Source: Magallana gigas
Taxonomy: Eukaryota
NCBI RefSeq assembly: GCF_963853765.1
Contig: NC_088853.1
Location: 22,258,001 to 22,322,000 of the forward strand
Length of the DNA: 64,000 bases
Reading direction: 5' to 3'
Shown here: positions 1 to 42,343 of the stretch, one piece after another
How positions within the stretch are numbered: the first letter of the stretch is position 1
Layout of the letters: each line of letters begins with the position of its first letter
Made by a program: the position numbers and the translations under genes
Notes under the pieces: generated by a model
Databases searched by the model: none
The model's input: the letters and a program-made list of their open reading frames with translations, nothing else
Told to the model about the DNA's origin: nothing

Positions 1-2942
1 AAATTGGAAATTTCATTGCCGTCAAACTTTGCTTTCTTAAATTCTTTGACTAAATTCAAATTTCCTTCATAACAGGCAACTTGCAGAGTTGAAATAAATT
101 CATTGCATATATTGACATCGGCACCCGCGTCTATCAGTTCCTTAACTACGTGAATATGAGCTTTATAGCAGGCAACTATAAGCGGTGTTTTATCTTCCTC
201 CGTGATATTGACAGCAGCCCCACGTTTGATCATTTCTTTAACATCTTCTAAATGTCCACGAAAACACTCAACTATAAATGATCTTTCGTTTGTGTTATTC
301 AGATCGACTTTTGACTCCATTTCGATTAACCTTTTGGTTATACTCAAATGGCTCCAATAACAGGGAAAGTTAAGTGTAGTTTTATCTTTATCATTTGGAT
401 CGATTTGAGCACCTGCTTTAACCAGCAATTTCAAAATATCAAAATAACCGCCATCACATGCAGCAATAAGCGGTGTTTTTCCTTCATGTCTTTTGTTTAC
501 CTCAACCCCCGATGATATCAGCTCTTTGACTATGCTAAAATGCCCCTTTTTACATGCAGCTAATAGCGGTGATTCAGAGTTCAAAGAAATATTGAGATCA
601 AGACCTGTTGTTATCAATTTTTCAACAATGCACAAATGATTTTCTTTGCAAGCATTTATTATGGGGGCGTTCAGATTGATATCAGCTCCTGCTTTTATCA
701 GCTCTTCAACTATAAGTGCGTGTCCTTCCTGACATGCAGACTGTAATGGTGAAATTAAAACACTTTTTTTATTGACACTAGCACCCAATTTCAATAATTC
801 TCTTACTGTGCTTTGCTGTCCATTTTCACACGCAGCTATTAAAGGTGTTTCAAAGTCTACGCACATATTGATATTAGCTCCAGCTTCTAACAGTGCCATG
901 ACAATATCTAGATATCCATATTTGCAAGCAATAATTAATGGATTTTTTTCAAAGTATACCATGCCTGAAGGCCAAACCCTGTTATTGAGAGCGTCTGTAT
1001 TGACATGTTTGAGTAATATTTGCACAGTATCAAGATCGCCAGAATAACAACCGAGACAAAGCAGGCGACATTGCTCAACAAAAAATGGTTCATCATACGT
1101 GTCACAAATTATGTCACTATTTGAGTCACTATCTATAAAACTAGCTTCATCATCATCTTGGTCACTGCAACTACTGTTAACGTTATTATCAATGTTTGTC
1201 TGGTTTATAAATGAATAACTTTGGTGGTGTTCATTGTAGCAACTGAGAAACAGGTCATTAATGTTTCCATTTGTTTGAATCATTTGATCTAAAATATACT
1301 GAAGAATTTTATAATGTCCAAAAAGAATAACCCATTGTATTCCCTTGAGACAGCTCATATAAGGATATAATCTGCCATGCCTACGTTCGATGATTGTATC
1401 ATTTATGAGAAAATCATATTCAAACATGCTCAATCTTGCGTGTTTCTTTTCCTCATCACCATATTTTTTAGGTTTATATTTCCATGCATCTACTTCAGAG
1501 GTGTTATTTAGCTCAGATATAAGTAACGTGTATAAATCATTATACGACTTCTTGTTCAATAATGTAATGAACTTTTGAAACACAGATGCAGTTTTCAAAG
1601 CTTCGTTACCGAACACGTCATAAAATTCGCCATTATATACGTCTTTGAACAGACGATCAGCTAGCATTGAATATTGGGGCTCATGCAGTTTTATACTTAA
1701 GTCGATGATAGTCTCACTTTCATGACTTGTTTGGATGCGTTTTTTATCTTCACTTTCTTTATCTTCTTCGCATTCTTCCTCTCTTTTCCTTTTTCTAGAG
1801 TTATCTTTATCTAGTTTGACATAACTAGCAATGTACTTACTACTCGCGTATTGCAAAATCAGTTCTGGATATTTACGACCAAAATGATATGCGATAATTT
1901 CAAACATGGAGTCGTGAATAAAAGTAAATTCATCGTCATTTTTCTTTGTGTAGGTTCCCTTCATTTCTGACAAGGCATTGATCAATTGAAAGTTATCTGT
2001 TGTAGATGGCACTTTACATGTTCTTAGAATGCTGCATTTCATCTCAGCAAACGAATTGTCTTCCATTGTCTCCTTAGCTGCATTATTGCCATTATCTAAC
2101 ATTTTTTCTGACAGTTTGTTTTTATTAGCCATAAGTAAAACTAACGAGACATACTGGTGCTTGTTATGTATTCTCAGTGAGTCCAATTCCTTCAGGATAC
2201 ATTCAATAGGTGATATGAAAAAAGAATTTCCATAAACTTTCAACTTCGGTTCGCTTGAAAAGAGTTTACATAAAAGAGGGAACATGCTTGAGGATGATGC
2301 CAAATTGTCCGAGGTCAAAAAATCTCTATCTAAAGAATATTTTTCAAGTAATTCTTGTTTGTCGTCATCGTTTAATGTGTTTTCTTTACTTTGTAAAAGA
2401 ACCGTATTCTTTCCTTTAACCAGAACACAGTCGGATACCAATTCATTTCTAAAAACTGCCTCACGACACGTCACAAGGGTTTTCGTTTTTCGATTGATTG
2501 GATCTTTAAGTCTTTCGCTGTATTTATTAATCATATGAAGTTCGTGTTCGTTTACTCCAAAAACTCCAAGGACATCATCGATTACAAACAACTGTGGAAT
2601 GTTTTGGTTACTATAATCTTCAATCTTGTTTATTTCCTTGATTGGAAAAATTTCATACCCTTCCTTTTGCAGTATTAGAGCAATATGACGGGCTGTTGCC
2701 GTTTTACCGGAGCCTGGAACACCGACAAACGTTACGTATGGTTGTGATCTGACTTGCTCTAGCATCACTGGGAAGTTGTGGGTTTCTAAAAACACTCTGT
2801 CATCCTCTTTCCACTTTGAAATATCCCTTTCATATAAAGCTGAAAAACAAAACCATGTGACTTGCTATTATTAATCAATGTACTGAAGTATTAAAAGCCG
2901 AGCTCTTTTGGTGTGTCTATGCTTATTGTGTAGTAAAGACTG

Positions 2943-3000
<58 letters not shown>

Positions 3001-3992
3001 GGTTTTAATGTCGACAAAACGTCAGAGAGCGAGCGACCAAATTTTGTAAGCGGCTATAAACAAAAATATGTCTGTCTGTAGAAAAAAGTTCAAGAGTTGC
3101 TGACTTGAATTTTGCAACAAGCGTTATATATTTGATCCCATTTCTTCCACGCGCAGCAAAGTAGTTCATAACAATTCCTGCGCATTGTATGTGTCCAAAA
3201 TGCATATTTTTGTTTTTAAAACACGTTATTGATAAGAAAACTAAATAGGATTGACAAATTCTCTCGAAATTAAAAGAAAAACAAAATGCCAACACTTTTG
3301 ACATAGCATGGCTCATTGTGTAACTATTTGGTTTATCGGAAGCTTTTACTTTGACGCTCTTTGTTTTTGTGTTTACTTTTGAAGTTGTGCTATTTATAGT
3401 AACATTGGCAATTTACCTGCCTACAGCCAGGACTTTCAGCGGAGCCCGGCTAAAAATCAAAGCTCAAATCGCAGTAATTTACACCGTAATTTAAATCTCA
3501 ATTTAAAATACGTGTCTTTAAAGAAAACACTTTGGCAATTAAAAAAACTCATTTCAAAAAGGTGATGCTTGATACATCTTATACAGCTATACGTTATGAA
3601 ATTCTGATTTAAAAGTTGTTCCACGGGGGTGTTAAAGAAGCATGTGGAAAAACTAGCGTCGTATTCTTACTGTTATACTCAAAATCGTGAGATCCATTAA
3701 TCGTTTTGAATCAGATCAACTAAGTATCATCCTTTGAAAGAGATATCAATGCAATGAAATCAAATAGTACATTACTGCCACATCGGTGCATTTATTAACA
3801 GCAAATAAATAAATAGCTTACGTATATGCCTTAACCTAAAATGACACTACCCTGCGGTTTCCACAAAACAATAAACATATCAAGTGAATGCAAACCATCT
3901 CAGTTTTATCACAAATGCTGATTGAATCCTACCTTTTCTTTAATTAAAACGTTATATTAATCATCTTGTTTAAAAAAAACAAAAAAATTTCA

Positions 3993-4082
<90 letters not shown>

Positions 4083-5535
4083 TTTGATACTGACTGACTA
4101 CAAATAAGTGTTTTGTTTTTCCTGAGGACTATCAAATGACATACTTATTTTTTTCACAAAAACGCATGTACAAGATGCCTATAACTTTGTCCAAATTAAC
4201 TCATTTAAACTTAAAATTACTAATTTCACATTTCATATACTCTTTAAAAATCTTCGCTTAACACATATTTACTATCAATGTTTTGTTTTGTTTTTGTTTC
4301 TTTTTTTTGCTATTCAATTGTAATCGTTTTCTCCCTATTTGAGCAAATTGCGATGAGGCCATTATGTTTTGTTCCAGACACAACAATGTGACGTCAATAT
4401 TCATAGGGCAACTATCCTTATTTTACAAAATTGCAAGGGGCAGTTACTCCAGATTTTTAAAGAATTTATAGCATGTGGTTTCTGTATTTGAAAATATGAA
4501 ATGTCGAAATGAGTAGGGGAAGCGTCGATCAATAATGGCCATATTGCCTAATATTAATTCTCAGTGAACTAACAAAGAGATATATGAGGAAATCACGTGC
4601 TATGTTTAAACCAACAAAAGTGTGACATTTCAGTCTGAGGGAAAAATAATATATATATATATAAGGTACATGCTACTAACATTGTATTTTTATGCTATGT
4701 TATTTGTTAAAATATAATTTCAAAAAATTTCAAAAACGAATATTGCATTTGTATTAGAGTAAAAAAATGGTTACCTTTTACATTCTCGGGAACACATCTT
4801 TTTTCAATTCTTTTTGTTCTCTCTGTTTATGAAAAAGAATTATAGTGAATACTTTGTGTATCTTTTTTTAAAAACGAGCTTATATGTCTCTAGTTAGATG
4901 CAAAAGTATCATTTTAAGTATATTTTAGTAAAATAGCTACCTGAAATATCATGAATTTTTGTATCCAAATTCTGCAACTCTTTGATGTATTTAGATTCCT
5001 GTTCAGGATCCATAGAGCATTTTGTGATCTTAACAACTGCGTTCTGATAAATGGTTGATATGCGTAGGTACTTTTCCAAATCCTGAATAATGCTGGAAAT
5101 TTCTAGAACTTTCTTATTAAAATCGGTGTCGGAAATAAATATATCTGTACAATGCCCGTACTTGTTTCTTATCAAACGAATTCTTTCAATGTTTGCTGAC
5201 ACACTCCTGTCACATGGGATTGGTTCATTTCCCCATTGTTTTGCATGTGGTGAAATGTTCGATATATTTCGCAAAAGAAAAAAGAGTAAAGTTATATCAA
5301 AGTCTGAGTAGTTTCCATTGTGTATGACCCTTTCTTGTTCTTTGGTAATTGGAGGTTGTTTCCGTTTTTGTAAATTAGCTAAATGTGTCGTTACCTTCTG
5401 TGACAGTGTTGACGGGGGGATCTCTTTCTTGAGAACATCACAAAGAAAATCTGTACAAGGACCCAATATAATGCGGGCTACACGAGCAAGGTTGGTGGTT
5501 TCCCGCGTTGATGCATACTTTGAGTTAGCCATCAT
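1..5535 (-). CDS. HEPN (DZIP3-like) - nSTAND3-type NTPase - ankyrin repeat protein, 3' end outside window; exons complement(4941..5535, 4775..4822, <1..2839), >1160 aa
   Basis: Hand translation gives one open frame across three GT-AG, phase-1 junctions. Exon 1: STRETTNLARVARIILGPC...DFDITLLFFLLRN...IERIRLIRNKYGH (DZIP3-type HEPN). 48-nt exon: ERTKRIEKRCVPENVK. Exon 3: Walker A GVPGSGKT, Walker B LFVIDD, sensor TCR, FPLLCKLF, FIHDS, then ~10 ankyrin repeats (e.g. TPLIAACENG, SPLQSACQEGH, TPLIVACYKAH). Missing from the ORF track because it has no stop inside the window. Confidence 0.93.
3622..3860. mobile_element. Diverged one-ended fragment of the TIR element family at 42833-43780, inside the HEPN-STAND gene intron
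   Basis: CACGGGGGTGTTAAAGAAGCATGTGGA resembles the TIR at 42833/43780; the following ~210 bp align by eye with the reverse complement of 43530-43755. Confidence 0.75.
3996..4079. repeat. (AT)n microsatellite
   Basis: Uninterrupted AT dinucleotide run. Confidence 0.98.
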
Positions 5536-7284
5536 TTATAAATCCCAGTACCATTTGTTCTGTAATTAAAAAGGGTTAACGTATTGGATCGTATCTTTTG
5601 TTAATTAGAATTAAGTGTGCTGCATGTATAATTTTCCTTTTTTTTCTCACAAATAGTTTGGAATAATAAGGCAAAAATGAAATTAAATTTATCATTCATT
5701 TTCATATAATTTTTCCGATACTTTTATAGATATAGTTCAGGGGCTAGTCAAGTATTATTTGCAGGACTTGAATTTTGATCTCTTATTTATTTCATTTTTT
5801 AGTCTTACAAATTCAAAATGGTAAGAGAAAATATGTTGTTTAAAAAAATCATCAGCCTTAAATTGAAGGAAAAAATAACATTGTATTTTAATTTGTATAA
5901 TATTTCTCATAGAAACGTTGAATGATTTATTAATTATTTGGCAACGACTCTGGCTTATTTATAAAACAGTGTGACAGATATCTGGCTTCGTGAAGGTAGG
6001 AATGGTTTTAGTCTATTTGATATCCCTAAATAACATTTCTTTTCTGTCCCATCATAATATGATATTGTATTGGTTTTAATGCCTGTCTGCTAATTCTGTC
6101 TGCCAACAATTATTAATTAACCTTTTTAAGTAAGACTTAAATAAACAAATATTACATATGCCGCAATTGTTGTTACCCATGCATTTAAAACTAATTCGCC
6201 ATATTTCCCAAAGAAAATTTATACTCTCCTTTGTTTTTTATCTTTGTCTATAGAAAACAATTTAACCGAAGTTCGTTTACTGATGGCATCAACGTACATT
6301 TGTAGCAGTAGACCCGATGATAGGATACAACCTCTTGTTTCTTTAGGATATAATTCAAAATTTCTTTGTATGGATTAACAACAAAATTTGATTCATAAAC
6401 ATATAATTTTAGATATAGGAGACGTTAAGAACTTTTTAGATTTTATTTTAAGTATGGATCGAAAATGTATGGTTTACAAACAAACGTTCTGGAGACATTG
6501 TTTTATACAAGAATTTCATACAAAAACTATAAAATATTTTAATGCGAGAAAATTGAAAAGATTGAGCATGATTGTTTGAAATTATGCAGTTATATTTTAT
6601 CAAAATAAGCTAATCTGTTTGATTTTTTTTTAATTTAACAACAAAAGAAAGAATGTGTCGTTTATTAACCCACCTATTTGAAATTCATGCTTTCATTCAT
6701 TCTTTATGGAAAACAACCGTTTTAATCCTTTGAATCAATGTGTGATTTAAAGAATTGCTTCATTTTACTTCGGATGTCTTTTTTTAGTTTAAGATTTGGC
6801 TTTGAATAATATTGTTGATTTATATTTTTAAGAGAGTTGCATGCAATTTAATTTCTATTCTGCAAGAGCATTGATTTAACATGAACAATGGTTTATAAAA
6901 ACAGTTCATATATTTACGTGTTACAAAAGACTGCAGAGCTGTTTATTAAAACTCGCTGTGTAATTATCATGTTTTACGTAGAAACTTGAATTCTATAAAC
7001 ACCCTATAGAAGGGGCCAAACAATGCAAACAAATACAAGTTAGATCATTCTTGCATGTGTGACTTTAAATCAAGTCAATATTTGATATAGCGAATTACTA
7101 GAACATTTAAATTACACTTTACAATTTCATCAAAATCGAATATTATGACTGAATTGCGACTTCTATTATATTTTGAGACTAATAGATATCTTTTCATACA
7201 TGTATAATGTTTCCCTATCACAGTTTTATTAGTTTTATTATGAAATTGTATTTAGATAAAGTGGGTTGATAGCCAACAGTGCTC

Positions 7285-7398
7285 AAACTCAAAAGTCCAT
7301 AACACGGACCACTACAAAATCAAAAGCAGGATTAGGCGCTATAGAGAAGTGAGCATCTCCTGCTGAAAAGTAACACCCACCGTGTGTCTTATGTCGTA
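7285..7398 (-). mobile_element. Inverted, diverged copy of the retroelement-like structured motif at 9225-9623
   Basis: Reverse complement TACGACATAAGACACACGGTGGGTGTTACTTTTCAGCAGGAGATGCTCACTTCTC...GGTCCGTGTT aligns to 9225-9330. Confidence 0.75.
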
Positions 7399-7872
7399 AA
7401 TAATAGTTATAATATTAATAGACTATTAATAGTTATCAACACTTTACTTAGATGAACATGTTTTTGAGTAAAGCTGACACTTTATCTAAGGAAATACAAT
7501 TATGTTATGAATCAACAAGAAAATTACTTACCTTTTTACATTCAAGGCCTCTAGCGCACTATGTTACATTAAAAATATATTCACGCCCTGTTTATTTTTC
7601 TCGTTACCTGGCAAAAACTTAATCGTGATCGTCCCATAATTAAACCTTTGAGCATTTCTTTTAGCTTGATTAAGCAGTGCAAAAAAACTTAAATGGCCAA
7701 TTTATGAAATGAAAGCGCTGCATTCATGTTATTAACAATGCAGCGTATAACCCTCGGTCATATCAACCAGTGTCAAGTTCTTTACCTTTTTTTTTTTTTT
7801 TTTACTTTGTTGATTGTGCTCTCAGATTATCTCCTCAATTATTATATGGAAGAAAAATATCTGAACAAAATA

Positions 7873-8046
7873 CAGTAAAACACAGTTATAGCGAACACGC
7901 TTATAATGAATTGACGGTTACAGCAAAGTGATTGCTATTCCCCGTGACTATATAACATGTTCTAAACTTGACGAATACAACGAATTACGCTTATAACGAA
8001 GCAAAATCGCCCGTCCCTGACGCTTCGTTATAACCGTGTTTTACTG
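7873..8046. mobile_element. 174-bp MITE, Tc1/mariner-type (TA target duplication)
   Basis: 23-bp TIRs CAGTAAAACAC(A/G)GTTATA(G/A)CGAA with 21/23 match; TA at 7871-72 and 8047-48. Confidence 0.9.
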
Positions 8047-26023: not shown

Positions 26024-26412
26024 TTAAGCTTTATTTCATATCTATTGATATTTAAACTTATAAAATCAGCAAGTTTTGGCGCTGAATTTAGTGTATATAA
26101 ATTGCACGAAGCTTTACAACAGAGCATTATACATTTAGAAAAATTCTATAAAAATAAGAAATTTGCACAACATTAGGCAGGTACCCAAAATATGAAAAAA
26201 CGTTTGAAAATTTCGAGGTTTTTCCTATAGTAAGTGGCAGCTTTTACGTGCGTGACCCATGTTTGAACCTACTTATGGAATATATTATTTCAAATAGTAA
26301 CGTGGGTTCTACCTACATAAAAATTGCACTGAAAAGGGGCCTATTCTCTATAGCTTCAGTGCACTTGCCCATTTTTTATGAAATACGAGTCACCATGCTT
26401 GTAAATACTCTA

Positions 26413-26470
<58 letters not shown>

Positions 26471-26522
26471 AAACGCGTTTTAATCATAGCATTCAAAGTT
26501 TGTATGTCTGCATTTCAATAGA

Positions 26523-29080
26523 ATGTCTACTGAAAAAGAAACACTACAACGGCGTAGCCAGCCGGTACCAGGGGGACAACAAGCCCCACCAGCCCCACCA
26601 GCTCAGCCCCCATCGGGCTTCCCACCCCACTCACAGGGCGCTAATCCAAACGAGCACATGCCGCCGCCATTACACGGGGCTAACCTTCCATCACAACCAC
26701 AGAACCTACCACAAGGTGGCTATCAACAACAGCCGCAATATATATACCCACAAGTACCACAATACGTTTTGCCCCAGAACCCTTCGTTGTCACAGCAACC
26801 ACCTACGGGATACATTCGTTACAATCTTAACCACCCAGTTATGTTTTGTCCGACGCCAGCTCCACAGAAATCCATTTTAGAGGCGTATATGCTACTGATT
26901 GTGCTAGGCTTATTCGGAGGACACCATTTCTACCTTAGACGTCCTGTATGGGGTATTTTGTACCTTTTTTCCTTCGGATTACTTGGCGCAGGATGGCTGA
27001 TTGATATTTTTAGACTTCCGGTCTTGGTATCACGATGTAATAACGACGCTTCACAACAAAACCCAAACCTAGCTAAGAAAAAGCATTTAGATGACGCATA
27101 TGTGCTCTGGTTTCCAGGCGGTTTTCTAGGTAGGTTTTATTTTAGACAATAGTGTAAGTCATGACTATAGATTTGTTTTACTTTAAAAAGCAATACCATA
27201 TTAAATGGATAAAATATTAATGGGTAAAATACATAAGAAAAATATTCAATAATCTAATAGGAGTAGGCGAGAAGGCATTATATTTACAAGCATAGTAGAT
27301 GGGAAGATAGTATTCTGATAGTAAATTGATTTGATTTATTTTTTGTCAATTAAGTAACGCGATAACAGCGTTAAAATCCTTCTTTTTCTATTCAGGTCTT
27401 CATCATTTCTACTTGAATAACATTGGCCTTGGAGTTCTATATTTGTTTACTTTCGGACTCCTCGGTGTTGGTTGGTTAATTGATGCCTGTCTGATGCCAT
27501 ACCATGTTAAGAAAGCCAACTCAAACATTCCAGATTCAATTGAGAAAAGCGCAGCCGCAACTTGCATCCTAGCTGTTTCTCCTGCGGGACTTCTCGGGGC
27601 TCATCATTACTATTTAAATAGAATCGGGTTCGGGCTTCTGTATACTTTCACTTTCGGTATTTTCGGTGTTGGTTACATTGTTGATTGGTTTCGTTTCCCA
27701 ATCTTACTCGAGCGCTATAACAAAAGTAAAGAAATTGGTCACACTTCTTACAAAAACCTTGATGACGCCTATCTTCTCTGGTTTCCACTCGGACTCCTCG
27801 GGTTTCATCATTTCTACCTAAACAGACCTGTTTGGGGGCTTCTGTACATGTTTACCTTCGGTTTGTTCGGCATTGGGTGGCTGATTGATTTTTGCCGGAT
27901 GTGTAAGTTGGTTGTTAATTGTAACAAAGATATTGTTGAACGAGTGCATCTAACCCGGAATAATCGGAGTGTTGCTTATCCCAACTATATTCCAGGACAG
28001 TATTATGGCAACATGCCGACATCAACAGGTAAGAAAATAAATGTGCATGTTACAAATCGTAATTTTCATCCAATCCACGAAAAGTGATGCTCACAAATAT
28101 TGACGAAACCACAGTATAAACCCTTTCATAAACATGTATAAAACCCATTTTCAGTTTATACATTTATTGCCGTCTTTAAATGCTACGAACTAGTCTATGT
28201 TATCCAAAATATTTCTTCAAGAATGAAAAGATTTCTTTTTGTATTCTATGTTTTACATATTTTAATGGCTTCCCTATCTTAAATCAAGTTGGAGGTCACG
28301 TGCCGGTCAGCTACGGTCAGTTTGGTCCTTGTCCACCGGGATATTCCAACCCAAATCCGGGGATATATCCAACACAACAAAACGGTGAGTTGACAAAAAC
28401 AATAGGTAAATGAAAACAAAATCACTGTTAACAAACATTTTAAGAAAATTGCGAGCATCAAAATGAAGTCGTCGCTAATAGACATTGGCTTTAAGTATCT
28501 GAAATTTACTTAATCGGGAAGATTAAGTGAAATTATCAAAATTAAAAAAAATATGTTGATTGTGTCTTTAAGACAAAGTGTCATGCATGATTTAGGTTCA
28601 TCCTAATTAGGTACTTATGTATGAAGTTATTTTCAAGGTTATGTAAAACTGAAAAGGTACAAAAACTAATTCTTGCAGTCAATATTTAGCAAAACCTTTA
28701 TCTATTTGAGCTGATATTCTACCAATACATACTCATGTAAGAGTATCTTTTTCAGTTTATAAGTAAATCTTTCAACAGTGGATAAAAAGGCGAATACATG
28801 TTAATGTACATATGATTACCGCTAAACTAAGAACGTTTATAGTCCTATATTTCATTCAATTATCTCAACACATCATATTTTTCTTTAAATCTTCTTAAAA
28901 GAGAACAGAAACAAAGGGAAAACACTCTCACTTTGATTGATATATTTTTGAACAGCACATTCAAATATCACATTTAAATATGTTATATTGTCCTTTTTAA
29001 CAGGATATGGTGCAGTTCATGGAATGAATGACCAACCCCCTCCATACGAGGCCGCGTCCATTCCTACCAAAGGTCACTAG
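26523..29080 (+). CDS. Four-TM2-domain membrane protein, copy A; exons join(26523..27129, 27396..28028, 28289..28384, 29004..29080), 470 aa
   Basis: P/Q-rich N-terminus; four repeats of AY.L....G..G.HH(F/Y)YL.....G.LY..(S/T)FG..G.G(W/Y)..D (TM2 pattern); P/G/Y-rich tail with PPGY and PPPY. All introns GT-AG, phase 1; total 1413 nt. Confidence 0.93.
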
Positions 29081-30170
29081 TTCAAAGGTCAAGGTCGCGA
29101 TATAATGGCCTTTATGCAATCGACGTCACTAGCGTCCAAAGTTTGTTTTGGAATTTGTTACAGGTGTATTTGATATTTCTAGGATAAAGAAAGTGTCTGA
29201 ACTTTCTAGTGTGGGAACTTTGTATAATGCATACATCAGCTTTTCTAGCTATATCCGATGTTGAAACTCATTTTATCATCATTTAAAATTATGATTGACG
29301 GACCTGTTGTATTATAGCATGGCTTGTTCAAATTGCTACAAATATGTCTGAGCTAGAAGATAAATATAGCATAGACTTACTTTAAAAAGAAACCTGTTTT
29401 AGAATAAATTGATGTTTTAAAATAGTTTTAATGCATGTTTTTTAAGTACAATAACGATTATATAGCCTATCTGTATGTTACATGTACATTTCGGTTGATA
29501 ATAAAATTGGTTTGTTGTGTTTAATTTACATACTTGTCAGTGTCCTTTAAATATAGGCCTGATATATCTTTACAGCTATATATATATATATATATATATA
29601 TGGATAATTATGCAAATGTCATAATTTCCTAAAGAAGAGATTACTTCCTCAAGTTTTGATAAAGTGGGTTTTATTATCCATGTCATTTTAGTCTTATTGC
29701 CGCCGAATTTACAGAAACCCCTTATGTTCACCGGTTACAGTTTATTCTATTACCCCAACGAAGGAGCCCTTATGCAAGTACATATATATGCAATACTGAA
29801 ATCTGATTGGTTAAGACGCCGTTGATAATCCGTTCTATTACCCCCAGCGTTCGCAACGCACTTAGCAACAGGTAACACAACGAATTGCTACATGAGCGTA
29901 AATTATGCGCATATAGTTCGCCATAGAATTCACTTCATTACTTTATAAAAGCAAAAAAGTGTTCTTTAAATTTAAGACATCCAGTAAAATAAAATAAATT
30001 GTGCCTGTTTATATGTTTAGATGGGTAAGAGTTGAAATTGACTCCCTGAGAAAACCAATGTCAACCGGCGGTACAGAACAGGCACTATTTATACAATACC
30101 TGTGACAGGTGCGTGGTTTGATTTCAAAATTCATTATAAATCGAAAATTCATCTACTTTAGATGAACATG

Positions 30171-30349
30171 CATAAGAGTCGGAAGCGAACGGGCGGGCTA
30201 GACCCCCCCCCCCCTCCTCCCCCATGTAAAGTTATACATAACCATAACCAAAGACCGTTCGGTTTTTGTTTTTTGGGGGGTTTTTTGGTCGAGATTTTTA
30301 ACAAGACTAGAATCCCCCCATACTTTCAATTTTTTTTCCGACGCCACTG
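30171..30349. mobile_element. Poly-G/C MITE (..GTCGGAA / TTCCGAC.. ends); copies at 36462-36639, 56032-56195, 56555-56737
   Basis: Shared short TIRs and G/C homopolymer interiors. Confidence 0.7.
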
Positions 30350-30905
30350 ATATGTATCAACAACACAGTGTGCTTTGGAATATTAGAAAATAGCGGGAAT
30401 TATTTTTATAAACAATTTTTGAAGAAAGAAAAAATAAAACTGAATGTTTAAAATCAGTCATCAATTTGAACTTCTTCTTTTTTTGAGTGAAAACACGATT
30501 GACACAAAAGAGTTCTGTAATTTAAAAATTTTGTCATTTAATCTTTTTCTTATTCATATTTTGTCTACGTTAAAAGTTTTAGAAATAAAGTTTTCTTGCT
30601 TGATAGGCTAATAATATTCACTTTTAATGAAAAGAAAGCAAACAATATGTTCAATGTATATTGTTCCGTCATCTGTTATCTCACAAACTTTGACCATGAA
30701 GCAATGTTATGGTTCTCACTGTTCAAACGTGAATCAGGCTGATACAAATTACTATTAGTCATTTTGACGATATATTCATAGATACATAGATAATGAAGCA
30801 AGTAGATAGCACTTTGTTACAAAAATAAATGTTGACATTTAACCTAATATTTAACAAAATGCTTTAAATCATAACTGACTAATAAAATTATATGGTACTA
30901 GATAA

Positions 30906-31126
30906 CTTTCAGGGTTATTTTCGCCCCGTGTAATTTTTGCCCCGTGTAATTTTCGCCTTTCTACACTTGCCAACAGTTTCCCCCAGTCTTGAATTCGCCC
31001 AGCTATTGGTGTTAAAAAAAATAGAATAGGACACATTGGAATTCGCGTACTCGTAAAATCGCTCAGTGACAACGAGGGCAAAAGGAACGGAAAATAAAAC
31101 GTGGGCGAATATTTCCCTGTATACAG
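30906..31126. mobile_element. MITE with CTGTATACAGGG...TTCGCCC ends, left end decayed; copy at 37196-37416
   Basis: Right end GGGCGAATATTTCCCTGTATACAG inverted relative to left CTTTCAGGGTTATTTTCGCCC; internal CGCCCCGTGTAATTTT repeats. Confidence 0.6.
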
Positions 31127-33189
31127 TTATACATTCATAAGTACATGAAAGACATATGTTTTGCCTAGGACTAGAATGTCTCGAAGTCATTGAATGAATC
31201 GCGTCACGTGACTGCCTTAAATTTCTTTACACGGCGGGCGTCAAAATTTATACGGCAACATGGCGGACGTAACGTTATTTGAGCTGATTTTTTACACAAA
31301 CGTTCAAACATACCTTTCATTCTTAAGCCCCAAAATATTTAGAGTGACCCCCTTTGCCCGTGACGTAAAAAAACGATCTTATATATACAACTGCATCCAG
31401 GTTTGCACAGAAATGTGTAGTGTTGGTAGAGTCTATAGAAGGCTCGGCTCCGCCTTGCCTTCTATGGACTTTACTGACCCCACAAATTTCTGTAAACAGT
31501 CAGTAACAGACCTGATAAGTAATAATGTTGTGTTATCACAATATCAGTGTGGTTTGGCACTATTTTTTTTGAAGTAAGGGCTGGGCCACGAGTCATCATT
31601 CATAGGAATGTTATTTGTAAAACTATACCACAAAGCTTTGCCAAAGATGGCAATTTTGCAATTTTAAAATAAAATCATTCAAATCCAACGAAATCCCAGA
31701 TACGCTATATTAAATATCAAACCAACGAATATACACAAACATTTAAATAACTCTCAACCGAACGATCCGCTCCAGTATTGGATCTCATCACCTGACTGTG
31801 TCGAGTGTCTAAAAATAGACTGTAAACAAAACTATGTCAATATCACGAGTTGGTGACCGAAATCCCGGCGTCTAAGATCAATAGAACCGAACCAATTGTG
31901 ACGTAACGGATCTTGTGACTCCGGTTCTTTGAATAAAACACCTGTGTTTTTGCTGTATGTCTGTCTGTCAGTATCGGATATTAGCCAGGTAAGTAAGATT
32001 TGCTGTATAGCTGGACTTCTTTTGTATTCGTGGGTATATCTGTACATGTATGTAAACACACAAGTTCAATTATTGGGTCACTGTTTGAAACTTGTATATT
32101 AGGGTTGTGTTTAATTTTATTTTGCAATTCTTGTTCATTAATTGAAAAATTAATCAACTGATGTTACATTCATTCATTTGTTTTTTTATATTAAACTTTT
32201 TCTAACAACTTTTATTGCTCCTATATCTATTACATTCAAATGTTAATACATGTTATTATAAGACAAAATTGAATATAACTTCAGACTTAATGAGTGGTGA
32301 AGGAATGAGCGGTCAGGCATTTTAATTGTTCACGCTTATAAATTATATATATTTTTTTATATTTCGAAGAGAATGAATTGTTCTGTTATCAGTTCTGTAG
32401 AAGTACAAATCATTTATAATTTTAAATTTCGGTAAGTCTTTTATCATGTTTCAAAATGTGGAATATTTCAATATATTTTTCGTAAGTAAATATATGTGTT
32501 AGCATTATTTTAATTATTAAGCAGAAAAATGTATTATAATATAGTTTGTATAACGAGGTAACAAAATCATTCGGGTATTTGGCAATATTATAAGGGTTAT
32601 GTGTTAAAAATGTGAAGCAATGATATTTCATTTATTCCAAAAGTAAACATTTTCATTTATAAGGACATGTGCACTTATGAGTCCAAGTAAAAAGTGAAAA
32701 AAATGAAAATTCAAATTAAGCATTATTTTATTTTTATAAATATTCAAACTAAAAGAATCAACAAGTTTTAGCGCTGAATTTAGTGTATAAAAATAGCACG
32801 AAGCTTTAAAACATAGTACGAGTCAGCCGACATTTGTGATTCTATAAAGTAAATCGAGGACAGGTATTCATTTCAAAGTAACTGTTTACTGTCAGACTAA
32901 TCGTGTACAAACTTGTGGAAAAGACAAAAGACGCATTATACATTTAGAAAACTCCTGTGAAAAAAAGTTTGCACAACATTAGGCAGGTACCCAGCATATA
33001 AAAAAACCGTATAAAAAATTCGATGCAGCTTTTACGTGCGTGACCCATGTTTGAACCCACTTATGGAATAAATTATTTCAAATAGTAACGTGGGTTATAC
33101 CTACATAAAAATTGCACTGAAAAGGGGCTCGTTCTCTACAGCTTAAGTGCACTTGCTTTTTCATATGAAATAAGAGTCAACATGCATGT

Positions 33190-33253
<64 letters not shown>

Positions 33254-33305
33254 AAACGCGTTTTAATCATAGCATTCAAAGTTTGTATGTCTGCATTTTA
33301 ATAGA

Positions 33306-35371
33306 ATGTCTACTGAAAAAGAAACACTACAACGGCGTAGCCAGCCGGTACCAGGGGGACAAGAAGCCCCACCAGCCCAGCCCCCATCGGAATTCACACC
33401 CAACCCACAGGGCGCTAATCCAAACGGGCACCTGCCGCCACCATTACACGGGGCTGACCTTCCATCACAACCACAGAACCTACCACAAGGTGGCTATCAA
33501 CAACAGCCACAATATATATACCCACAAGTACCACAATACGTTTTGCCCCAGAACCCTTCGTTGTCACAGCAACCACCTACGGGATACATTCGTTACAATC
33601 TTAACCATCCAGTTATGTTTTGTTCGATTTTTTTTGTCAATTAAGTAACGCGATAACAGCGTTAAAATCCTTCTTTTTCTATTCAGGTCTTCATCATTTC
33701 TACTTGAATAACATTGGCCTTGGAGTTCTATATTTTTTTACTTTCGGACTCCTCGGTGTTGGTTGGTTAATTGATGCCTGTCTGATGCCATACCATGTTA
33801 AGAAAGCCAACTCAAACATTCCAGATTCAATTGAGAAAAGCGCAGCCGCAACTTGCATCCTAGCTGTTTCTCCTGCGGGACTTCTCGGGGCTCATCATTA
33901 CTATTTAAATAGAACCGGGTTCGGGCTTCTGTATACTTTCACTTTTGGTATTTTCGGTATTGGTTACATTGTTGATTGGTTTCGTTTCCCAATCTTACTC
34001 GAGCGCTATAACAAAAGTAAAGAAATTGGTCACACTTCTTACAAAAACCTTGATGACGCCTATCTCCTCTGGTTTCCACTCGGACTCCTCGGGTTTCATC
34101 ATTTCTACCTAAACAGACCTGTTTGGGGGCTTCTGTACATGTTTACCTTCGGTTTGCTCGGCATTGGGTGGCTGATTGATTTATGCCGGATGTGTAAGTT
34201 GGTTGTTAATTGTAACAAAGATATTGTTGAACGAGTGCATCTTACCCGGAATAATCGGAGTGTAGCTAATCCCAACTATATTCCAGGACAGTATTATGGC
34301 AACATGCCGACATCAACAGGTAAGAAAATAAATGTGCATGTTACAAATCGTAATTTTCATCCAATCCACGAAAAGTGATGCTCACAAATATTGACGAAAC
34401 CACAGTATAAACCCTTTCATAAACATATATAAAACCCATTTTCAGTTTATACATTTATTGCCGTGTTTAAATGCTACGAACTAGTCTATGTTATCCAAAA
34501 TATTTCTTCAAGAATGAAAAGATTTCTTTTTGTATTCTATGTTTTACATATTTTAATGGCTTCCTTATCTTAAATCAAGTTGGAGGCCACGTGCCGGTCA
34601 GCTACGGTCAGTTTGGTCCTTGTCCACCGGGATATTCCAACCCAAATCCGGGGATATATCCAACACAACAAAACGGTGAGTTGACAAAAACAATAGGTAA
34701 ATGAAAACAAAATCACTGTTAACAAACATTTTAAGAAAATTGCGAGCATCAAAATGAAGTCGTCGCTAATAGACATTGGCTTTAAGTATCTGAAATTTAC
34801 TTAATCGGGAAGATTAAGTGAAATTATCAAAATTAAAAAAAATATGTTGATTGTGTCTTTAAGACAAAGTGTCATGCATGATTTAGGTTCATCCTAATTA
34901 GGTACTTATGTATGAAGTTATTTTCAAGGTTATGTAAAACTGAAAAGGTACAAAAACTAATTCTTGCAGTCAATATTTAGCAAAACCTTTATCTATTTGA
35001 GCTGATATTCTACCAATACATACTCATGTAAGAGTATCTTTTTCAGTTTATAAGTAAATCTTTCAACAGTGGATAAAAAGGCGAATACATGTTAATGTAC
35101 ATATGATTACCGCTAAACTAAGAACGTTTATAGTCCTATATTTCATTCAATTATCTCAACACATCATATTTTTCTTTAAATCTTCTTAAAAGAGAACAGA
35201 AACAAAGGGAAAACACTCTCACTTTGATTGATATATTTTTGAACAGCACATTCAAATATCACATTTAAATATGTTATATTGTCCTTTTTAACAGGATATG
35301 GTGCAGTTCATGGAATGAATGACCAACCCCCTCCATACGAGGCCGCGTCCATTCCTACCAAAGGTCACTAG
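33306..35371 (+). pseudogene. TM2 gene copy B with internal deletion; segments 33306..33627 (fused to an intron remnant), 33687..34319, 34580..34675, 35295..35371
   Basis: Relative to copy A, ~26854-27334 is missing (first TM2 repeat, half of the second and the splice donor). As assembled, the first frame stops at 33642-33644 (112 aa); the downstream exons are intact with no stops. Confidence 0.8.
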
Positions 35372-38300
35372 TTCAAAGGTCAAGGTCGCGATATAATGGC
35401 CTTTATGCAATCGACGTCACTAGCGTCCAAAGTTTGTTTTGGAATTTGTTACAGGTGTATTTGATATTTCTAGGATAAAGAAAGTGTCTGAACTTTCTAG
35501 TGTGGGAACTTTGTATAATGCATACATCAGCTTTTCTAGCTATATCCGATGTTGAAACTCATTTTATCATCATTTAAAATTATGATTGACGGACCTGTTG
35601 TATTATAGCATGGCTTGTTCAAATTGCTACAAATATGTCTGAGCTAGAAGATAAATATAGCATAGACTTACTTTAAAAAGAAACCTGTTTTAGAATAAAT
35701 TGATGTTTTAAAATAGTTTTAATGCATGTTTTTTAAGTACAATAACGATTATATAGCCTATCTGTATGTTACATGTACATTTCGGTTGATAATAAAATTG
35801 GTTTGTTGTGTTTAATTTACATACTTGTCAGTGTCCTTTAAATATAGGCCTGATATATCTTTACAGCTATATATATATATATATATATATATGGATAATT
35901 ATGCAAATGTCATAATTTCCTAAAGAAGAGATTACTTCCTCAAGTTTTGATAAAGTGGGTTTTATTATCCATGTCATTTTAGTCTTATTGCCGCCGAATT
36001 TACAGAAACCCCTTATGTTCACCGGTTACAGTTTATTCTATTACCCCAACGAAGGAGCCCTTATGCAAGTACATATATATGCAATACTGAAATCTGATTG
36101 GTTAAGACGCCGTTGATAATCCGTTCTATTACCCCCAGCGTTCGCAACGCACTTAGCAACAGGTAACACAACGAATTGCTACATGAGCGTAAATTATGCG
36201 CATATAGTTCGCCATAGAATTCACTTCATTACTTTATAAAAGCAAAAAAGTGTTCTTTAAATTTAAGACATCCAGTAAAATAAAATAAATTGTGCCTGTT
36301 TATATGTTTAGATGGGTAAGAGTTGAAATTGACTCCCTGAGAAAACCAATGTCAACCGGCGGTACAGAACAGGCACTATTTATACAATACCTGTGACAGG
36401 TGCGTGGTTTGATTTCAAAATTCATTATAAATCGAAAATTCATCTACTTTAGATGAACATGCATAAGAGTCGGAAGCGAACGGGCGGGCTAGACCCCCCC
36501 CCCCTCCTCCCCCATGTAAAGTTATACATAACCATAACCAAAGACCGTTCGGTTTTTGTTTTTTGGGGGGTTTTTTGGTCGAGATTTTTAACAAGACTAG
36601 AATCCCCCCATACTTTCAATTTTTTTTCCGACGCCACTGATATGTATCAACAACACAGTGTGCTTTGGAATATTAGAAAATAGCGGGAATTATTTTTATA
36701 AACAATTTTTGAAGAAAGAAAAAATAAAACTGAATGTTTAAAATCAGTCATCAATTTGAACTTCTTCTTTTTTTGAGTGAAAACACGATTGACACAAAAG
36801 AGTTCTGTAATTTAAAAATTTTGTCATTTAATCTTTTTCTTATTCATATTTTGTCTACGTTAAAAGTTTTAGAAATAAAGTTTTCTTGCTTGATAGGCTA
36901 ATAATATTCACTTTTAATGAAAAGAAAGCAAACAATATGTTCAATGTATATTGTTCCGTCATCTGTTATCTCACAAACTTTGACCATGAAGCAATGTTAT
37001 GGTTCTCACTGTTCAAACGTGAATCAGGCTGATACAAATTACTATTAGTCATTTTGACGATATATTCATAGATACATAGATAATGAAGCAAGTAGATAGC
37101 ACTTTGTTACAAAAATAAATGTTGACATTTAACCTAATATTTAACAAAATGCTTTAAATCATAACTGACTAATAAAATTATATGGTACTAGATAACTTTC
37201 AGGGTTATTTTCGCCCCGTGTAATTTTTGCCCCGTGTAATTTTCGCCTTTCTACACTTGCCAACAGTTTCCCCCAGTCTTGAATTCGCCCAGCTATTGGT
37301 GTTAAAAAAAATAGAATAGGACACATTGGAATTCGCGTACTCGTAAAATCGCTCAGTGACAACGAGGGCAAAAGGAACGGAAAATAAAACGTGGGCGAAT
37401 ATTTCCCTGTATACAGTTATACATTCATAAGTACATGAAAGACATATGTTTTGCCTAGGACTAGAATGTCTCGAAGTCATTGAATGAATCGCGTCACGTG
37501 ACTGCCTTAAATTTCTTTACACGGCGGGCGTCAAAATTTATACGGCAACATGGCGGACGTAACGTTATTTGAGCTGATTTTTTACACAAACGTTCAAACA
37601 TACCTTTCATTCTTAAGCCCCAAAATATTTAGAGTGACCCCCTTTGCCCGTGACGTAAAAAAACGATCTTATATATACAACTGCATCCAGGTTTGCACAG
37701 AAATGTGTAGTGTTGGTAGAGTCTATAGAAGGCTCGGCTCCGCCTTGCCTTCTATGGACTTTACTGACCCCACAAATTTCTGTAAACAGTCAGTAACAGA
37801 CCTGATAAGTAATAATGTTGTGTTATCACAATATCAGTGTGGTTTGGCACTATTTTTTTTGAAGTAAGGGCTGGGCCACGAGTCATCATTCATAGGAATG
37901 TTATTTGTAAAACTATACCACAAAGCTTTGCCAAAGATGGCAATTTTGCAGCTGCATAAGATGCTGCTTCGTGAAAAATAAAAGCGGCTATAAAATCTCC
38001 AAAAAAAAAATAAAAACGTATATTTTCTAGCATATTTGATTTTTTTTTAAAAATGCATAACCATATTGGCGCTGTAATAATTATCCAACATAGTGTTTTG
38101 TCATAAACTTTTTAAAAGAGATGTAGCTTACTAATGTTGTGCATTAATACACTTCGAACAAATAAAACAACACTTTCATATGAAAGAAAAATATTAGAAT
38201 ATCAAATGTAGCAAAGCAAATAGGTATATTTAATATTGGGTTTAAGTTAATCAAGAAGAAAAAGACGAGTAGAAGGAAAAAGAAAAACACATATTTATTA

Positions 38301-40020
38301 TATTTATATGTTGATAGAAAAACCAAATAATTGATCTTTTTATCACGAAAATGGAAATGGAGACAACCCCTGTATATGCAGCATATACATTATCCAAAAA
38401 AAAATGAGGAAAGATAATAGAAGAAGGGATAGTAAAATGGTTTGCATTAAACATTTCTTCACTATATTACATAACTAGATAAACTAACGAACGCACGTAC
38501 ATGTAATCAATAAATTAAAAAATGTAGCATTAATTGATAATTATGAAGTTTTTTTATTTTAATTTAAAGGATACTCGTTTACTTAAAAAAGGTGTTAATC
38601 AAAAAATGCGAACAGTATACCATTCACATCAGTATATAAACAAATACATGATAAAATAATAAATTTTAAATTAAGATATTCATTTTTCTTTTTTGATATT
38701 TAATTATGTCATCCTATAAATAGCATTTATAATCGTTTCCATCATTTGTTAATTTAAAAAAGTAATTCTTTGATATTTTATTTTGCATTGATACATGTAC
38801 CTTTCATAGAATGATTTTGCTTTTTTAAACGTTCATACAACAATTTAAAATAAGTATATGTAGGCATGTAGTTTAGTAGTACCTAAAAAATGGGCAAAAT
38901 TTTTCTTTGTATTTGAATTCATTAAAACTTATAATTGTAAGAGTTGTCTATGTGTACCTATCGTTATGCCAATTGATAAGGCAAGATAAATGTAACCGAT
39001 AAAAACTGAGTCATAAATTTTGACAATGATATACAGTCTATTTGAATGCACCGTATTGTAACGGTAAAACACACATGCATATGTCGCTACTGAACTGAAA
39101 TAAATTATGTTAATATGCTTCTTGTGTACTAAATAGTGTAATACACGTTCAATCTTATTTTTATTCAGAAATACATGTATATAACACTCTTTAACAATAT
39201 CTGATTAACCCGGATCAGGACAAACAGTTATAAATTATAACAAGCGAACAAATTCTAAAAAATGTTCCCCTTTGTACGTTTTTGTTTTTGAAATATCTAT
39301 CATCAACAAATGTTCAATCCTGATTTATACTTTATTAGACATATATGCTATTTTCCATGTGCACACCCTCGCAGAGTGGAGTGACAAAGTTGACATATAT
39401 CATGGGTGTTTTGAACTATTTTGGGTTTTAGCATGGTACATGCAACATATTTCATGAATTAAGGAAATATTGTTTTAGTATTTTATGAGGGATAAATATG
39501 CTGAGGACAAAGTGGCATTTTTGTTTCAGCGAAGGTACTGCGTTTCCAATAAACTAATTTCAATAATTGTTTCTAAATAAAATTCAACTGCTTTGCCTTT
39601 TATATAATAATTGTTATGTAGGTTATGTGTAATGATTTTTACAAAAATTAGCGTATTCTTAATGAAAAAAATTCAATATCTTTGTTTTTAATGGTGGAAC
39701 ATCTGAATTTCTTGTTTAAAAATTCCGTATCAATTAAATTCTTGAAAAAAAAGAGTTCATAGTTGGAGAAATAAAAGTTATGCAGTCAATTATTTTCTTA
39801 TGGATTTAATATTTCGTCTCGTAAAATATTTAATTTTAGGAAGATATCTCATCCATAAGGTGAACCATGATAAAAACAAAAGTGGTAAACACAATCTCAA
39901 AGCAAATAAGTTTGTTGAAAAAACCGTAAATAGGAGTTGCAAATATGCCATCTTTGCAATAAGATACTTATCTAGCTCAATTTTGATGATTGGTATTTTT
40001 GGCATCTATATCTTCTTAGA

Positions 40021-42343
40021 ATGAGCACCGAACTAGAAACTCAACAACAACACACCCAGCCGGGGCCTGATAGTCAACAAGCCACAACAGACCAGTTCCC
40101 GCCAGGCTTACCAGTCAATCCGCAAGGTGCTTATCCGAACGGGCACCTGTCGCCGCCATTACATGGGGCTCACCTTCCGGCACAATATGGCTACCAGCAA
40201 CAGCAACCGCAATATGGATACCCACAATACGTCTCGCCGACGAATTCGCCAGACTCCAAAAAACTTATGAGGGAATACGAGGGGAACAGCCACAATCACG
40301 CGGCTATGTGTCCAGAGCCGACGTCACGAATACGTGTTTCTCTCATTGAGGCTTACTTATTGATGATTGTCCTGGGCATTTTTGGAGCGCACCATTTTTA
40401 CCTTAAGCGCCCACGATGGGGACTCCTCTACCTTTTCACTTTTGGCTTGCTCGGCGCTGGATGGCTCATTGACATATTTAGACTTCCGGTCTTGGTTGCC
40501 CGATTTAATAACGAAGCTTCTCACCCAGATCCAAGCCTTGCCAAGAAAAAGCGTTTGGATGATGTTTATGTGTTGTGGTTTCCAGGTGGTCTTATAGGTA
40601 GGTTACATTATACTGTAACGGTGGAAAGCAGTACATGAATTATGAAATATTTAACTATAGTTGATAGAATATTAAAACTACACATAAAACTAATACATTT
40701 ACTCTGGTAAAGCTCCTTATCTTTCAATTTATTTTTCACCAGGGCTTCATCATTTCTACCTGAATAACACCAGGCTCGGAATTTTCTATCTCTGCTCATT
40801 CGGAATTTTCGGTATTGGTTGGTTAATTGATGCCTTTATAATGCCATACCATGTAAAAATCGCCAACTCTGATAGCCAGGATTCCACTGAAAAAAGATTT
40901 ACAACGACCTGCATCCTAGCTATTTCTCCTACGGGACTCTTCGGAGCTCATCATTACTATTTGAACCGATTTGGTTTTGGGCTTCTCTATACTTTCACTT
41001 TCGGGATTTTTGGCGTAGGATACATCGTGGATTGGTTTCGTTTTCCAGTTTTACTAAAGCGCTCTAACAAAGGCAGGACAATGCTCCACAGTACCCACAA
41101 ACACCTCGATGACGCTTACCTTCTCTGGTTTCCACTCGGATTCCTCGGGTTTCATCATTTCTACTTAAACAGGCGTGGCTGGGGACTACTGTACATGTAT
41201 ACTTTCGGTTTCCTTGGCATTGGGTGGCTCGTCGATCTTTGCCGGATGCGGACGTTGGTAGAAAATTGTAATAGAGACATTGACGAACGAGTGCATCTTA
41301 CCGGAAATAATATAGGTATACCTAACCCGAGCTTTAACATTGGGCAGTATTACGGTAACTTGCCAATAAGGACAGAAAAACATGCTTGTAAATAAATTCT
41401 ATCTAAATTACATGTCATTTAAAATTATGTATTGGAATAAAAAGCTAAAATACGCTATAGAATCGGTAAGATAAGTTCAAAGGGGGGTTTAGAGGTGGGC
41501 TTTTGTTTTCTTAATCAACAGTATTTAGCCTCATCGACCTAATTATTTTTCGTTTATTGTCAGTCGGGGGTCACGTGCCGCTCAACTACGGACAGACGGG
41601 TCCCTCTCCACCGGGATACTCCAACCCACATCCGGGTATTTATCAAACACAGCAGAACGGTGAGTTTGAATTACAAATTGACAACAGGGTACCAGAAACA
41701 GATTATAATTTTGTTTCACTGAATCAGATCATTGAAGTTAATATCAAAAAGATATTCAAACCCAAGAACAACGTAGAGAATTTAAGTAAGGTACATGTGG
41801 GAAGTCTGTTAATTTCACCTAGATATACACGGCGGATTTAAAATCTTTTTTTAAAAAGGCATTTACCGANNNNNNNNNNNNNNNNNNNNNNNNNNNNNNN
41901 NNNNNNNNNNNNNNNNNNNNNNNNNNNNNNNNNNNNNNNNNNNNNNNNNNNNNNNNNNNNNNNNNNNNNNNNNNNNNNNNNNNNNNNNNNNNNNNNNNNN
42001 NNNNNNNNNNNNNNTCTTGGAATTTTCATTTAGCTACATGTATATAGGTCTGTGCATGTACAGGTACTGATAATGCACATAATAGTAAAATTGAGATGGT
42101 AATTAGTGATCATCTCATTTGCGTTATCACGAATTAACACCGCCATATAAGTACTTGGTTTTAATGAACGCGTTTTATTTAGCTTCTACAATGTAAATCA
42201 ATTTTCATCTTTAAACGTACATATCTTCTCTACGTGGTAACTTAAATACCTTTGATTTTTTAACAGGATATGGTTCTGTTCCTGGAATGAATGACCAACC
42301 CCCTCCATACGAGGCCGCGTCAGTTCCTACCAAAGGTCACTAG
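40021..42343 (+). CDS. Four-TM2-domain membrane protein, divergent copy C; exons join(40021..40597, 40743..41387, 41564..41659, 42267..42343)
   Basis: Same exon phases, four HH(F/Y)YL TM2 repeats, 96-nt and 77-nt terminal exons identical in size to copy A, PPGY and PPPY retained; frame open throughout. Confidence 0.92.
41870..42014. other. Assembly gap (145 N) in the last intron of TM2 copy C
   Basis: Run of N. Confidence 1.

Follow-up and report, generated by a model that had tools for sequence, protein, structure and literature searches.

A gene on the minus strand of an oyster chromosome encodes a protein of 1474 amino acids in which a DZIP3-type HEPN domain, a predicted STAND-class NTPase and a solenoid of 20 ankyrin repeats succeed one another from the N-terminus to the C-terminus. 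The gene occupies positions 1-5535 of a 64,000-nucleotide stretch of the Magallana gigas genome, which we call the window (G000:C1:22258001-22322000, on contig NC_088853.1 of assembly GCF_963853765.1), and it continues past the first base of that stretch. At the level of the family to which it belongs, we read the protein as a cytosolic, ligand-gated HEPN ribonuclease (RNase), and give this reading a probability of about 0.6. The effector-NTPase-repeat layout on which it builds had been proposed by a sequence-only reading of the same DNA and is borne out by Pfam: HEPN_DZIP3, nSTAND3 and Ank all match far above their cut-offs.

Coding exon 1 encodes a DZIP3-type HEPN domain

Coding exon 1 (4941-5535, minus strand; 198 codons and one further base) contains the start codon and the DZIP3-type HEPN domain, and is followed by a GT donor at 4940-4939. 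HEPN_DZIP3 (PF18738) matches this exon with an E-value of 1e-21 and 77.6-77.8 bits against a Pfam cut-off of 27. The match spans residues 43-183 and profile positions 3-144 of 144. It includes RNKYGH (5152-5169, minus strand), a HEPN catalytic-type motif of the form R-N-x3-H. The translation was checked, and the intact R-x4-H motif claimed from the sequence alone is indeed present and is conserved across relatives. In a 73-sequence alignment of the domain, R123, N124 and H128 of the motif are conserved at ≥90%, as are R118, R120, D80, R89 and the pair W101-G102. With the HEPN exon as query, an exhaustive search returned 1126 representative clusters at E ≤0.001. Among the fetched relatives that cover the motif, 155 of 179 have R-N-x3-5-H, and 10 more have Rx4-6H.

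The AlphaFold2 (AF2) model of the domain is all-helical and confident, with a predicted local distance difference test score (pLDDT) of 92.7. Its only significant matches among the Swiss-Prot models of AFDB are residues 376-585 of mouse and human DZIP3 (E 4e-6), and the template modelling (TM) score, by query, against these predicted DZIP3 residues is 0.66-0.70. Among solved structures, an exhaustive aligner ranked the HEPN domain of Streptococcus mutans Csm6 best (Z 7.9, root-mean-square deviation 3.5, 112 residues aligned). Six more HEPN proteins appear in the top 50: Csm6 of E. italicus, AbiF, HepS, a Cas13-type nuclease, Swt1 and LsoA. A complex prediction of the HEPN homodimer gave a score of 0.29 (mark, 0.32), which we count neither for nor against dimerisation. 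Searched by sequence with the HEPN exon, the solved structures yielded SATB1 alone, at chance level.

The central region is predicted to be a STAND switch

The last exon begins with a P-loop NTPase domain. nSTAND3 (Pfam PF20720) matches exon-3 residues 16-167 (2337-2792, minus strand) with E-values of 1e-22 to 1.5e-22 and 80.4-80.7 bits against a cut-off of 27.2, over profile positions 1-152 of 155. The switch motifs recognised in the sequence-only reading are all in place and intact. On the minus strand, these are Walker A, GVPGSGKT (2700-2723); Walker B, FVIDD (2574-2588); the sensor-1 motif TCR (2463-2471), with which strand E119-125 of the AF2 model ends; and the MHD-like FIHD (1911-1922), directly after the beta-hairpin of a predicted winged-helix domain. 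An alignment of 48 homologues over the NTPase-helical region shows that their key residues hardly vary: five Walker A residues (G39, G42, S43, G44 and K45) are the same in every sequence, as are D88 in Walker B, R125 in sensor 1 and H308 in FIHD, and D87, T123 and C124 are conserved at ≥90%.

The AF2 model of the NTPase region has a pLDDT of 77, with values above 85 for most of residues 1-340. It predicts, in order, a nucleotide-binding domain (NBD), a helical domain (HD1), a winged-helix domain (WHD) and a further confident helical domain, followed by the ankyrin repeats, and it places FIHD between the hairpin E297-300/E303-306 and helix H309-322. Residues 108-443 of Dark, which comprise its NBD-HD1-WHD, align on model residues 1-331 (Z 11.7-11.8, 271-276 aligned), while the NBD and lid alone are about equally close to NSF and proteasomal AAA+ (Rpt) proteins (Z ~12). 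Foldseek matches of the same model include archaeal STAND-like ATPases, NLRP2/3/7/14, Apaf-1, NOD2, NLRC4, Dark, a wheat resistosome and SAMD9. The model thus supports a STAND-class NTPase with a predicted NBD-HD1-WHD fold as the central domain. A profile search of solved structures with the NTPase alignment returned P-loop matches only (SRP54/FtsY) and was uninformative on clade.

The NTPase core also has a relative among bacterial phage-defence candidates. Exon-3 residues 6-129 (window positions ~2451-2822) match the PADLOC phage-defence candidate PDC-S73 with an E-value of 9.5e-12, over profile positions 165-290 of 752. This match suggests that nSTAND3 has relatives among bacterial single-gene defence candidates with an N-terminal extension of ~165 amino acids. 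A second PADLOC match is to mad8 (E 6e-4).

Ankyrin repeats form the C-terminal part

The protein ends in 20 ankyrin repeats of 32 amino acids each, in an ankyrin domain that comprises residues 815-1474. Repeats 1 to ~11 lie in the window (1-1040, minus strand; 32-amino-acid period, consensus TPLIAACEEGHLDIVKELIKAGADVNQSDGNK), and repeats 12-20 lie past its edge. The Pfam family Ank_2 scores 213.8 bits for the part in the window and reaches an E-value of 2.3e-140 over the whole C-terminal part. The sequence-only reading had counted about 10 repeats; the repeats are present, and the count is corrected to ~11 in the window and 20 in the protein.

The gene is intact and has three coding exons

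The gene has three coding exons on the minus strand of window positions 1-5535 (5535-4941, 4822-4775 and 2839-1). The start codon ATG occupies 5535-5533. The codon before it, at 5538-5536, is a TAA in the same frame, which makes the N-terminus of the gene complete. A micro-exon of 48 nt (4775-4822, minus strand; 16 codons, ...RTKRIEKRCVPENVK) joins the HEPN domain to the NTPase. The last exon (in-window part 1-2839, minus strand; AG acceptor at 2841-2840) encodes the NTPase, the helical and winged-helix domains, a linker and the first ~11 ankyrin repeats. Both introns are GT..AG on the minus strand. The single open spliced frame described from the sequence alone is intact, and its exon count has been corrected to three by addition of the micro-exon.

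Beyond window base 1, the last exon runs for another 942 nt to a TAA at G000:C1:22257058-22257060. Its open frame comprises 1259 codons (561-4337, minus strand, of L001, a stretch that includes the 1500 bases before the window). A premature stop in the unseen 3' end, which the sequence-only reading had raised as a threat to its own claim, does not occur between the window edge and this TAA; all 1474 codons of the full product are open. We find that the gene is an intact member of its family, with a complete frame and canonical splice sites.

Contigs from two sets of RNA-library data and poly-A reads from two further sets, the reads sampled at about 1 in 100, were mapped on positions 1-5600. 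The joints 2839|4775 and 4822|4941, both of which involve the micro-exon, are found in RNA contigs of runs X1 and X8, which come from two studies. Their intron ends appear as CT..AC on the plus strand, equivalent to GT..AG on the minus strand of the gene. One contig of 4090 nt covers all three exons and thereby shows that the three-exon model, micro-exon included, is right.

Intron 2 contains repetitive DNA of its own. At 2990-3200 there is a dispersed repeat of ~210 bp, for which the genome offers at least 768 candidates that are 88-91% identical. It has no Rfam match and is probably a SINE-like (short interspersed nuclear element) or MITE-like (miniature inverted-repeat transposable element) sequence. 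RNA-library depth over the repeat is very high, and many of the reads run into unrelated sequence. We therefore rejected the high RNA depth at ~2990-3200 as a feature of the gene, as it comes from the dispersed repeat. Long microsatellites, of the types (GA)n/(TC)n and (TA)n, lie in the same intron at 2939-3006 and 3966-4089; as repeats, they were passed over in the read mapping.

Intact and broken copies coexist in the oyster genome

The gene is one of many. HEPN_DZIP3 matches at least 113 exons of the genome, of which a single one contains stops, and nSTAND3 has at least 234 candidates there. Related HEPN-nSTAND3-Ank copies lie on the same chromosome at G000:C1:21.07-22.26 Mb, where seven loci (L008-L014) were examined in addition to this gene and its near-copy. 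The large exon is intact in some of them (L012, L013), while L008, L009, L010 and L014 are frameshifted, contain stops or are truncated, and L011 consists of the HEPN exon only. This mixture of intact and broken copies is as expected for fast-turnover immune families, with birth-and-death dynamics. Between L012 and the present gene, protein identity is 88% in the HEPN exon and 56% in the large exon. This difference suggests exon-level mosaicism, by gene conversion or shuffling, among the copies of the cluster.

The closest copy lies ~670 kb away, at G000:C1:21586500-21596499 (L006), and is 96.8% identical across the whole gene, introns included. In the assembly it carries GGA>TGA at codon 856; a public transcript-derived allele, P0001, is open. 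Diagnostic differences between the two copies number 36 in the in-window part of exon 3 (for example at 53, 62, 129, 141, 165 and 198) and 22 in exon 1 (at 5102-5485). This near-copy could be a true recent duplicate or a polymorphic/haplotypic duplicate.

The same combination of HEPN_DZIP3, nSTAND3 and Ank is numerous among the database proteins of C. gigas, C. angulata, Saccostrea and Ostrea. This abundance in oysters agrees with the literature searched and with the earlier remark that the architecture is common in bivalves. The best named database relatives are only ~60% identical to this gene.

Comparison with known systems

The gene adds a member to a known, expanded and uncharacterised family, of which the fusions and the oyster expansion were described in 2013 and 2022. 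The DZIP3/hRUL138 HEPN family was defined by Anantharaman et al. (2013), who found its motif "mostly conserved", reported fusions in animals with ankyrin, NACHT, CARD, Death, LRR and TPR domains, and noted expansions in Nematostella, "the oyster" and Capsaspora (PMC3710099). In the pearl oyster, more than 50 HEPN_DZIP3-NACHT genes have been described, with RNA degradation as their proposed function, and the Rx4-6H motif is kept in 194 of 202 DZIP3-like HEPN domains (Takeuchi et al. 2022, PMC9646362). In cnidarians, DZIP3-type HEPN is the commonest partner of NACHT (PMC8260672). The present gene shares with these invertebrate fusions (PMC3710099, PMC9646362, PMC8260672) an N-terminal PF18738 domain, a STAND-class NTPase with repeats and the Rx4-6H motif, and likewise lineage-specific expansion and clustering. 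However, the published DZIP3-type fusions combine NACHT with LRR, TPR or WD40 repeats, whereas this gene combines nSTAND3 with ankyrin. The term nSTAND3 was not found in the literature searched on nSTAND, nor in the text of PMC7159879.

Bacteria offer the same order of parts. HEPN exists there as an N-terminal effector of STAND proteins, and attention has been drawn both to bacterial HEPN-STAND proteins and, as the paradigm, to RNase L (PMC3710099). Avs proteins and HEPN-STAND proteins of the Npun_F6454 type (PMC3710099, Table 1) consist of an effector, a STAND NTPase and a repeat sensor, as does the oyster protein; unlike in Avs, the putative sensor here consists of ankyrin in place of TPR-like repeats, and the HEPN domain is of the DZIP3 family of animals. 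No Avs model in PADLOC matched, only PDC-S73 and mad8. Ligand recognition and tetramerisation were reportedly shown for Avs by Gao et al. in 2022.

RNase L resembles the protein in being an animal protein with ankyrin repeats and a HEPN-superfamily RNase domain (KEN). It is activated by dimerisation on ligand binding. The KEN domain has been classed as HEPN (PMC3710099). The order of the parts is reversed, with ankyrin N-terminal and nuclease C-terminal in RNase L; furthermore, its switch is a pseudokinase and not a STAND NTPase, and its HEPN family is KEN and not DZIP3. We found no Pfam match to the KEN (Ribonuc_2-5A), RNase L or Ire1 domains at E ≤1 anywhere in the oyster protein. The phrase "analogue of RNase L", used in the sequence-only reading, can be kept as an analogy, without homology of the switch.

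Human SAMD9 and SAMD9L are, as in the reading proposed here, animal innate-immune proteins with a STAND-like P-loop NTPase and an RNA nuclease effector on its N-terminal side. SAMD9/SAMD9L cleaves tRNA on activation (PMC10246899), a precedent for an animal STAND-like protein with an RNA nuclease. The effector of SAMD9 is, however, an AlbA_2-type nuclease and not HEPN, and SAMD9 is without an ankyrin sensor. SAMD9 structures match the NTPase model only weakly (E 2e-4, TM 0.24), and at the sequence level the two were not detectably related.

With Apaf-1/Dark and the NLRs the protein has in common the NBD-HD1-WHD(-HD2) arrangement, Walker A and B, the sensor-1 Arg, the WHD His and C-terminal repeats. 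Effectors in those proteins are CARD, PYD or Death domains and repeats are WD40 or LRR, whereas here an enzyme-type domain is combined with ankyrin. Pfam gives no NB-ARC or NACHT membership (NACHT, PF05729, matches just the P-loop and reaches 12.8 bits where 26.7 are required) and no LRR family at E ≤1 in the protein. The earlier description "NLR-like" thus fits the layout of the protein and not its families, as NACHT is below its cut-off and LRRs are missing. Judged by these profile matches, the protein is not a NACHT-LRR NLR, not an Avs and not a member of the RNase L family.

Other features of the window

Plus-strand open reading frames in 1-5535 are only short (≤91 amino acids) and overlap the minus-strand gene or its introns, and an Rfam scan of window positions 1-8000 found no RNA families. 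Elsewhere in the window, at least five open frames that encode TM2 domains (PF05154, E 1e-14 to 5e-36) are arrayed in tandem on the plus strand at 26248-41395. They look like a TM2-domain gene family that has been duplicated locally. At 52124-53251 on the minus strand there is a single-exon frame of 375 amino acids with a beta-1,3-galactosyltransferase domain (PF01762, E 1e-52).

Proposed mechanism and alternative readings

The mechanism we propose is drawn from the domain layout and from characterised STAND proteins. In the off state, the ankyrin solenoid and the ADP-bound NTPase would restrain the protein. A ligand bound to the ankyrin repeats would lead to nucleotide exchange and oligomerisation, and oligomerisation would gather the N-terminal HEPN domains, where paired R-N-x3-H motifs would make up the RNase site. 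The RNase would then cut host and/or invader RNA, resulting in translational arrest or cell death. This order, from ligand sensing through STAND oligomerisation to a HEPN RNase, may reasonably be taken as the most economical reading of the anatomy, and it is by analogy that we infer RNase activity, ligand, oligomerisation and an immune role. RNase activity of the HEPN domain, taken by itself and argued from analogy, comes slightly short of an even chance. That the members of the family, among them this copy, are true ligand-gated RNases, in which oligomerisation assembles the DZIP3-type HEPN domains into an endoribonuclease, is a more tentative proposition, which we place somewhat lower.

The observations that weigh against the ligand-gated RNase reading concern the HEPN domain, the transcripts and the sensor. 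For the HEPN domain, no solved structure of the DZIP3 type was among those that the HEPN exon matched by sequence; Foldseek of the HEPN model against PDB returned nothing at E ≤0.001; and the matches to solved HEPN RNases all have Z ≤7.9, under the noise bar of the aligner for helical bundles. The literature searched contained no RNA-cleavage test of any DZIP3-type HEPN domain and no biochemical or genetic test of any family member, in line with the earlier remark that the family is functionally uncharacterised. Human DZIP3 (hRUL138), which gave the family its name, is an RNA-binding RING E3 ligase and is not known to be an RNase. The HEPN domain may then be a non-nuclease, that is, an RNA- or nucleotide-binding or homotypic assembly module, and the protein a scaffold, a signalling hub or an RNA sensor that acts via partners. 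The isolated HEPN domain of sacsin is reported to bind RNA (PMC13669270), and there are HEPN families in which the motif is lost and which act non-catalytically (Anantharaman et al. 2013, PMC3710099). However, this copy and most of its relatives retain R-N-x3-5-H together with the Asn that characterises active HEPN RNases, and the published survey likewise found the motif of the DZIP3 family largely conserved. A non-nuclease role is disfavoured because, unless the motif serves catalysis, its conservation among genes that evolve so fast would be difficult to account for, and we consider such a role unlikely, while giving it some weight.

The transcripts raise a question about this particular copy. 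The RNA contigs carry the letters of the near-copy at 24 of 26 (X8) and 18 of 25 (X1) variant places. The splicing contigs stem from the near-copy, or from a near-copy-like allele, and not from the copy in the window. The poly-A reads give almost no depth on the exons at their sampling of about 1 in 100, so this copy is perhaps silent or very weakly expressed. Given the birth and death of genes in this family, it may even be a duplicate that is silent or in decay, without function and open only because the duplication is recent. That the spliced contigs fit the 97%-identical copy at C1:21.59 Mb would agree with such decay, as would the TGA at codon 856 of that near-copy, the frameshifted or truncated state of several cluster members, and the result that no protein among database proteins of comparable length is 100% identical to the product. 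Against it stand the 1474 open codons, the two GT..AG introns and the intact state of every catalytic-type motif. The ratio of nonsynonymous to synonymous substitution (dN/dS) against the near-copy is 0.55 overall and lower in the enzymatic domains, with 0.13 in the NTPase and 0.29 in the HEPN domain; it is 0.73 in the linker and 0.80 in the C-terminal ankyrin part, with dS very uneven. The RNA evidence, moreover, comprises only two contig sets and two thinly sampled read sets. We regard a functionless duplicate as improbable.

As for the sensor, no ligand and no induction data are attributable to this gene. A surface-directed diversification of the ankyrin repeats relative to the nearest copy was considered and rejected: the differences are proportionate over both classes of position, with 17 at 14 framework positions and 25 at 18 variable positions. 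The OsHV-1 induction of "Dzip3" in a single-nucleus atlas was also set aside, as it is not mappable to this gene. A functional HEPN-STAND-ankyrin protein might instead work outside immunity, in housekeeping or under stress, and not sense pathogens; the regulated turnover of RNA, the control of transposons and proteostasis are examples of such roles. This would accord with the lack of infection-response data tied to this gene, with the generic protein-binding nature of ankyrin repeats, and with the suggestion that transposable-element RNAs are possible targets (Takeuchi et al. 2022, PMC9646362). However, hundreds of copies, clusters of intact and broken genes and mosaic exons are hallmarks of conflict genes and not of housekeeping genes, and the NTPase core is related to the phage-defence candidate PDC-S73. 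A non-immune role thus appears very improbable to us, and the ligand-gated HEPN RNase is the reading we retain for the family.

Implications

Taken singly, the locus does not stand out within its family. Its practical use is as a complete construct with clear boundaries, of 1474 amino acids and with a verified exon structure, for functional work on the family. If the ligand-gated RNase reading is true, the protein would be an invertebrate functional counterpart of RNase L, SAMD9 or the bacterial HEPN-STAND defence proteins, and its activity would be the first demonstration of catalysis in the DZIP3 HEPN family. Animal receptors would then be connected with the STAND defence proteins of bacteria, and the HEPN domain of human DZIP3 would gain a biochemical reference point.

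Oysters have no adaptive immune system, and OsHV-1 and Vibrio cause mass mortalities among them. Should the reading hold, the hundreds of ankyrin-variant paralogues would represent a germline-encoded recognition repertoire in these animals. With a HEPN domain that becomes an active RNase on oligomerisation, if this is what it does, the family would make up a major group of effectors in the innate immunity of invertebrates that has been overlooked.

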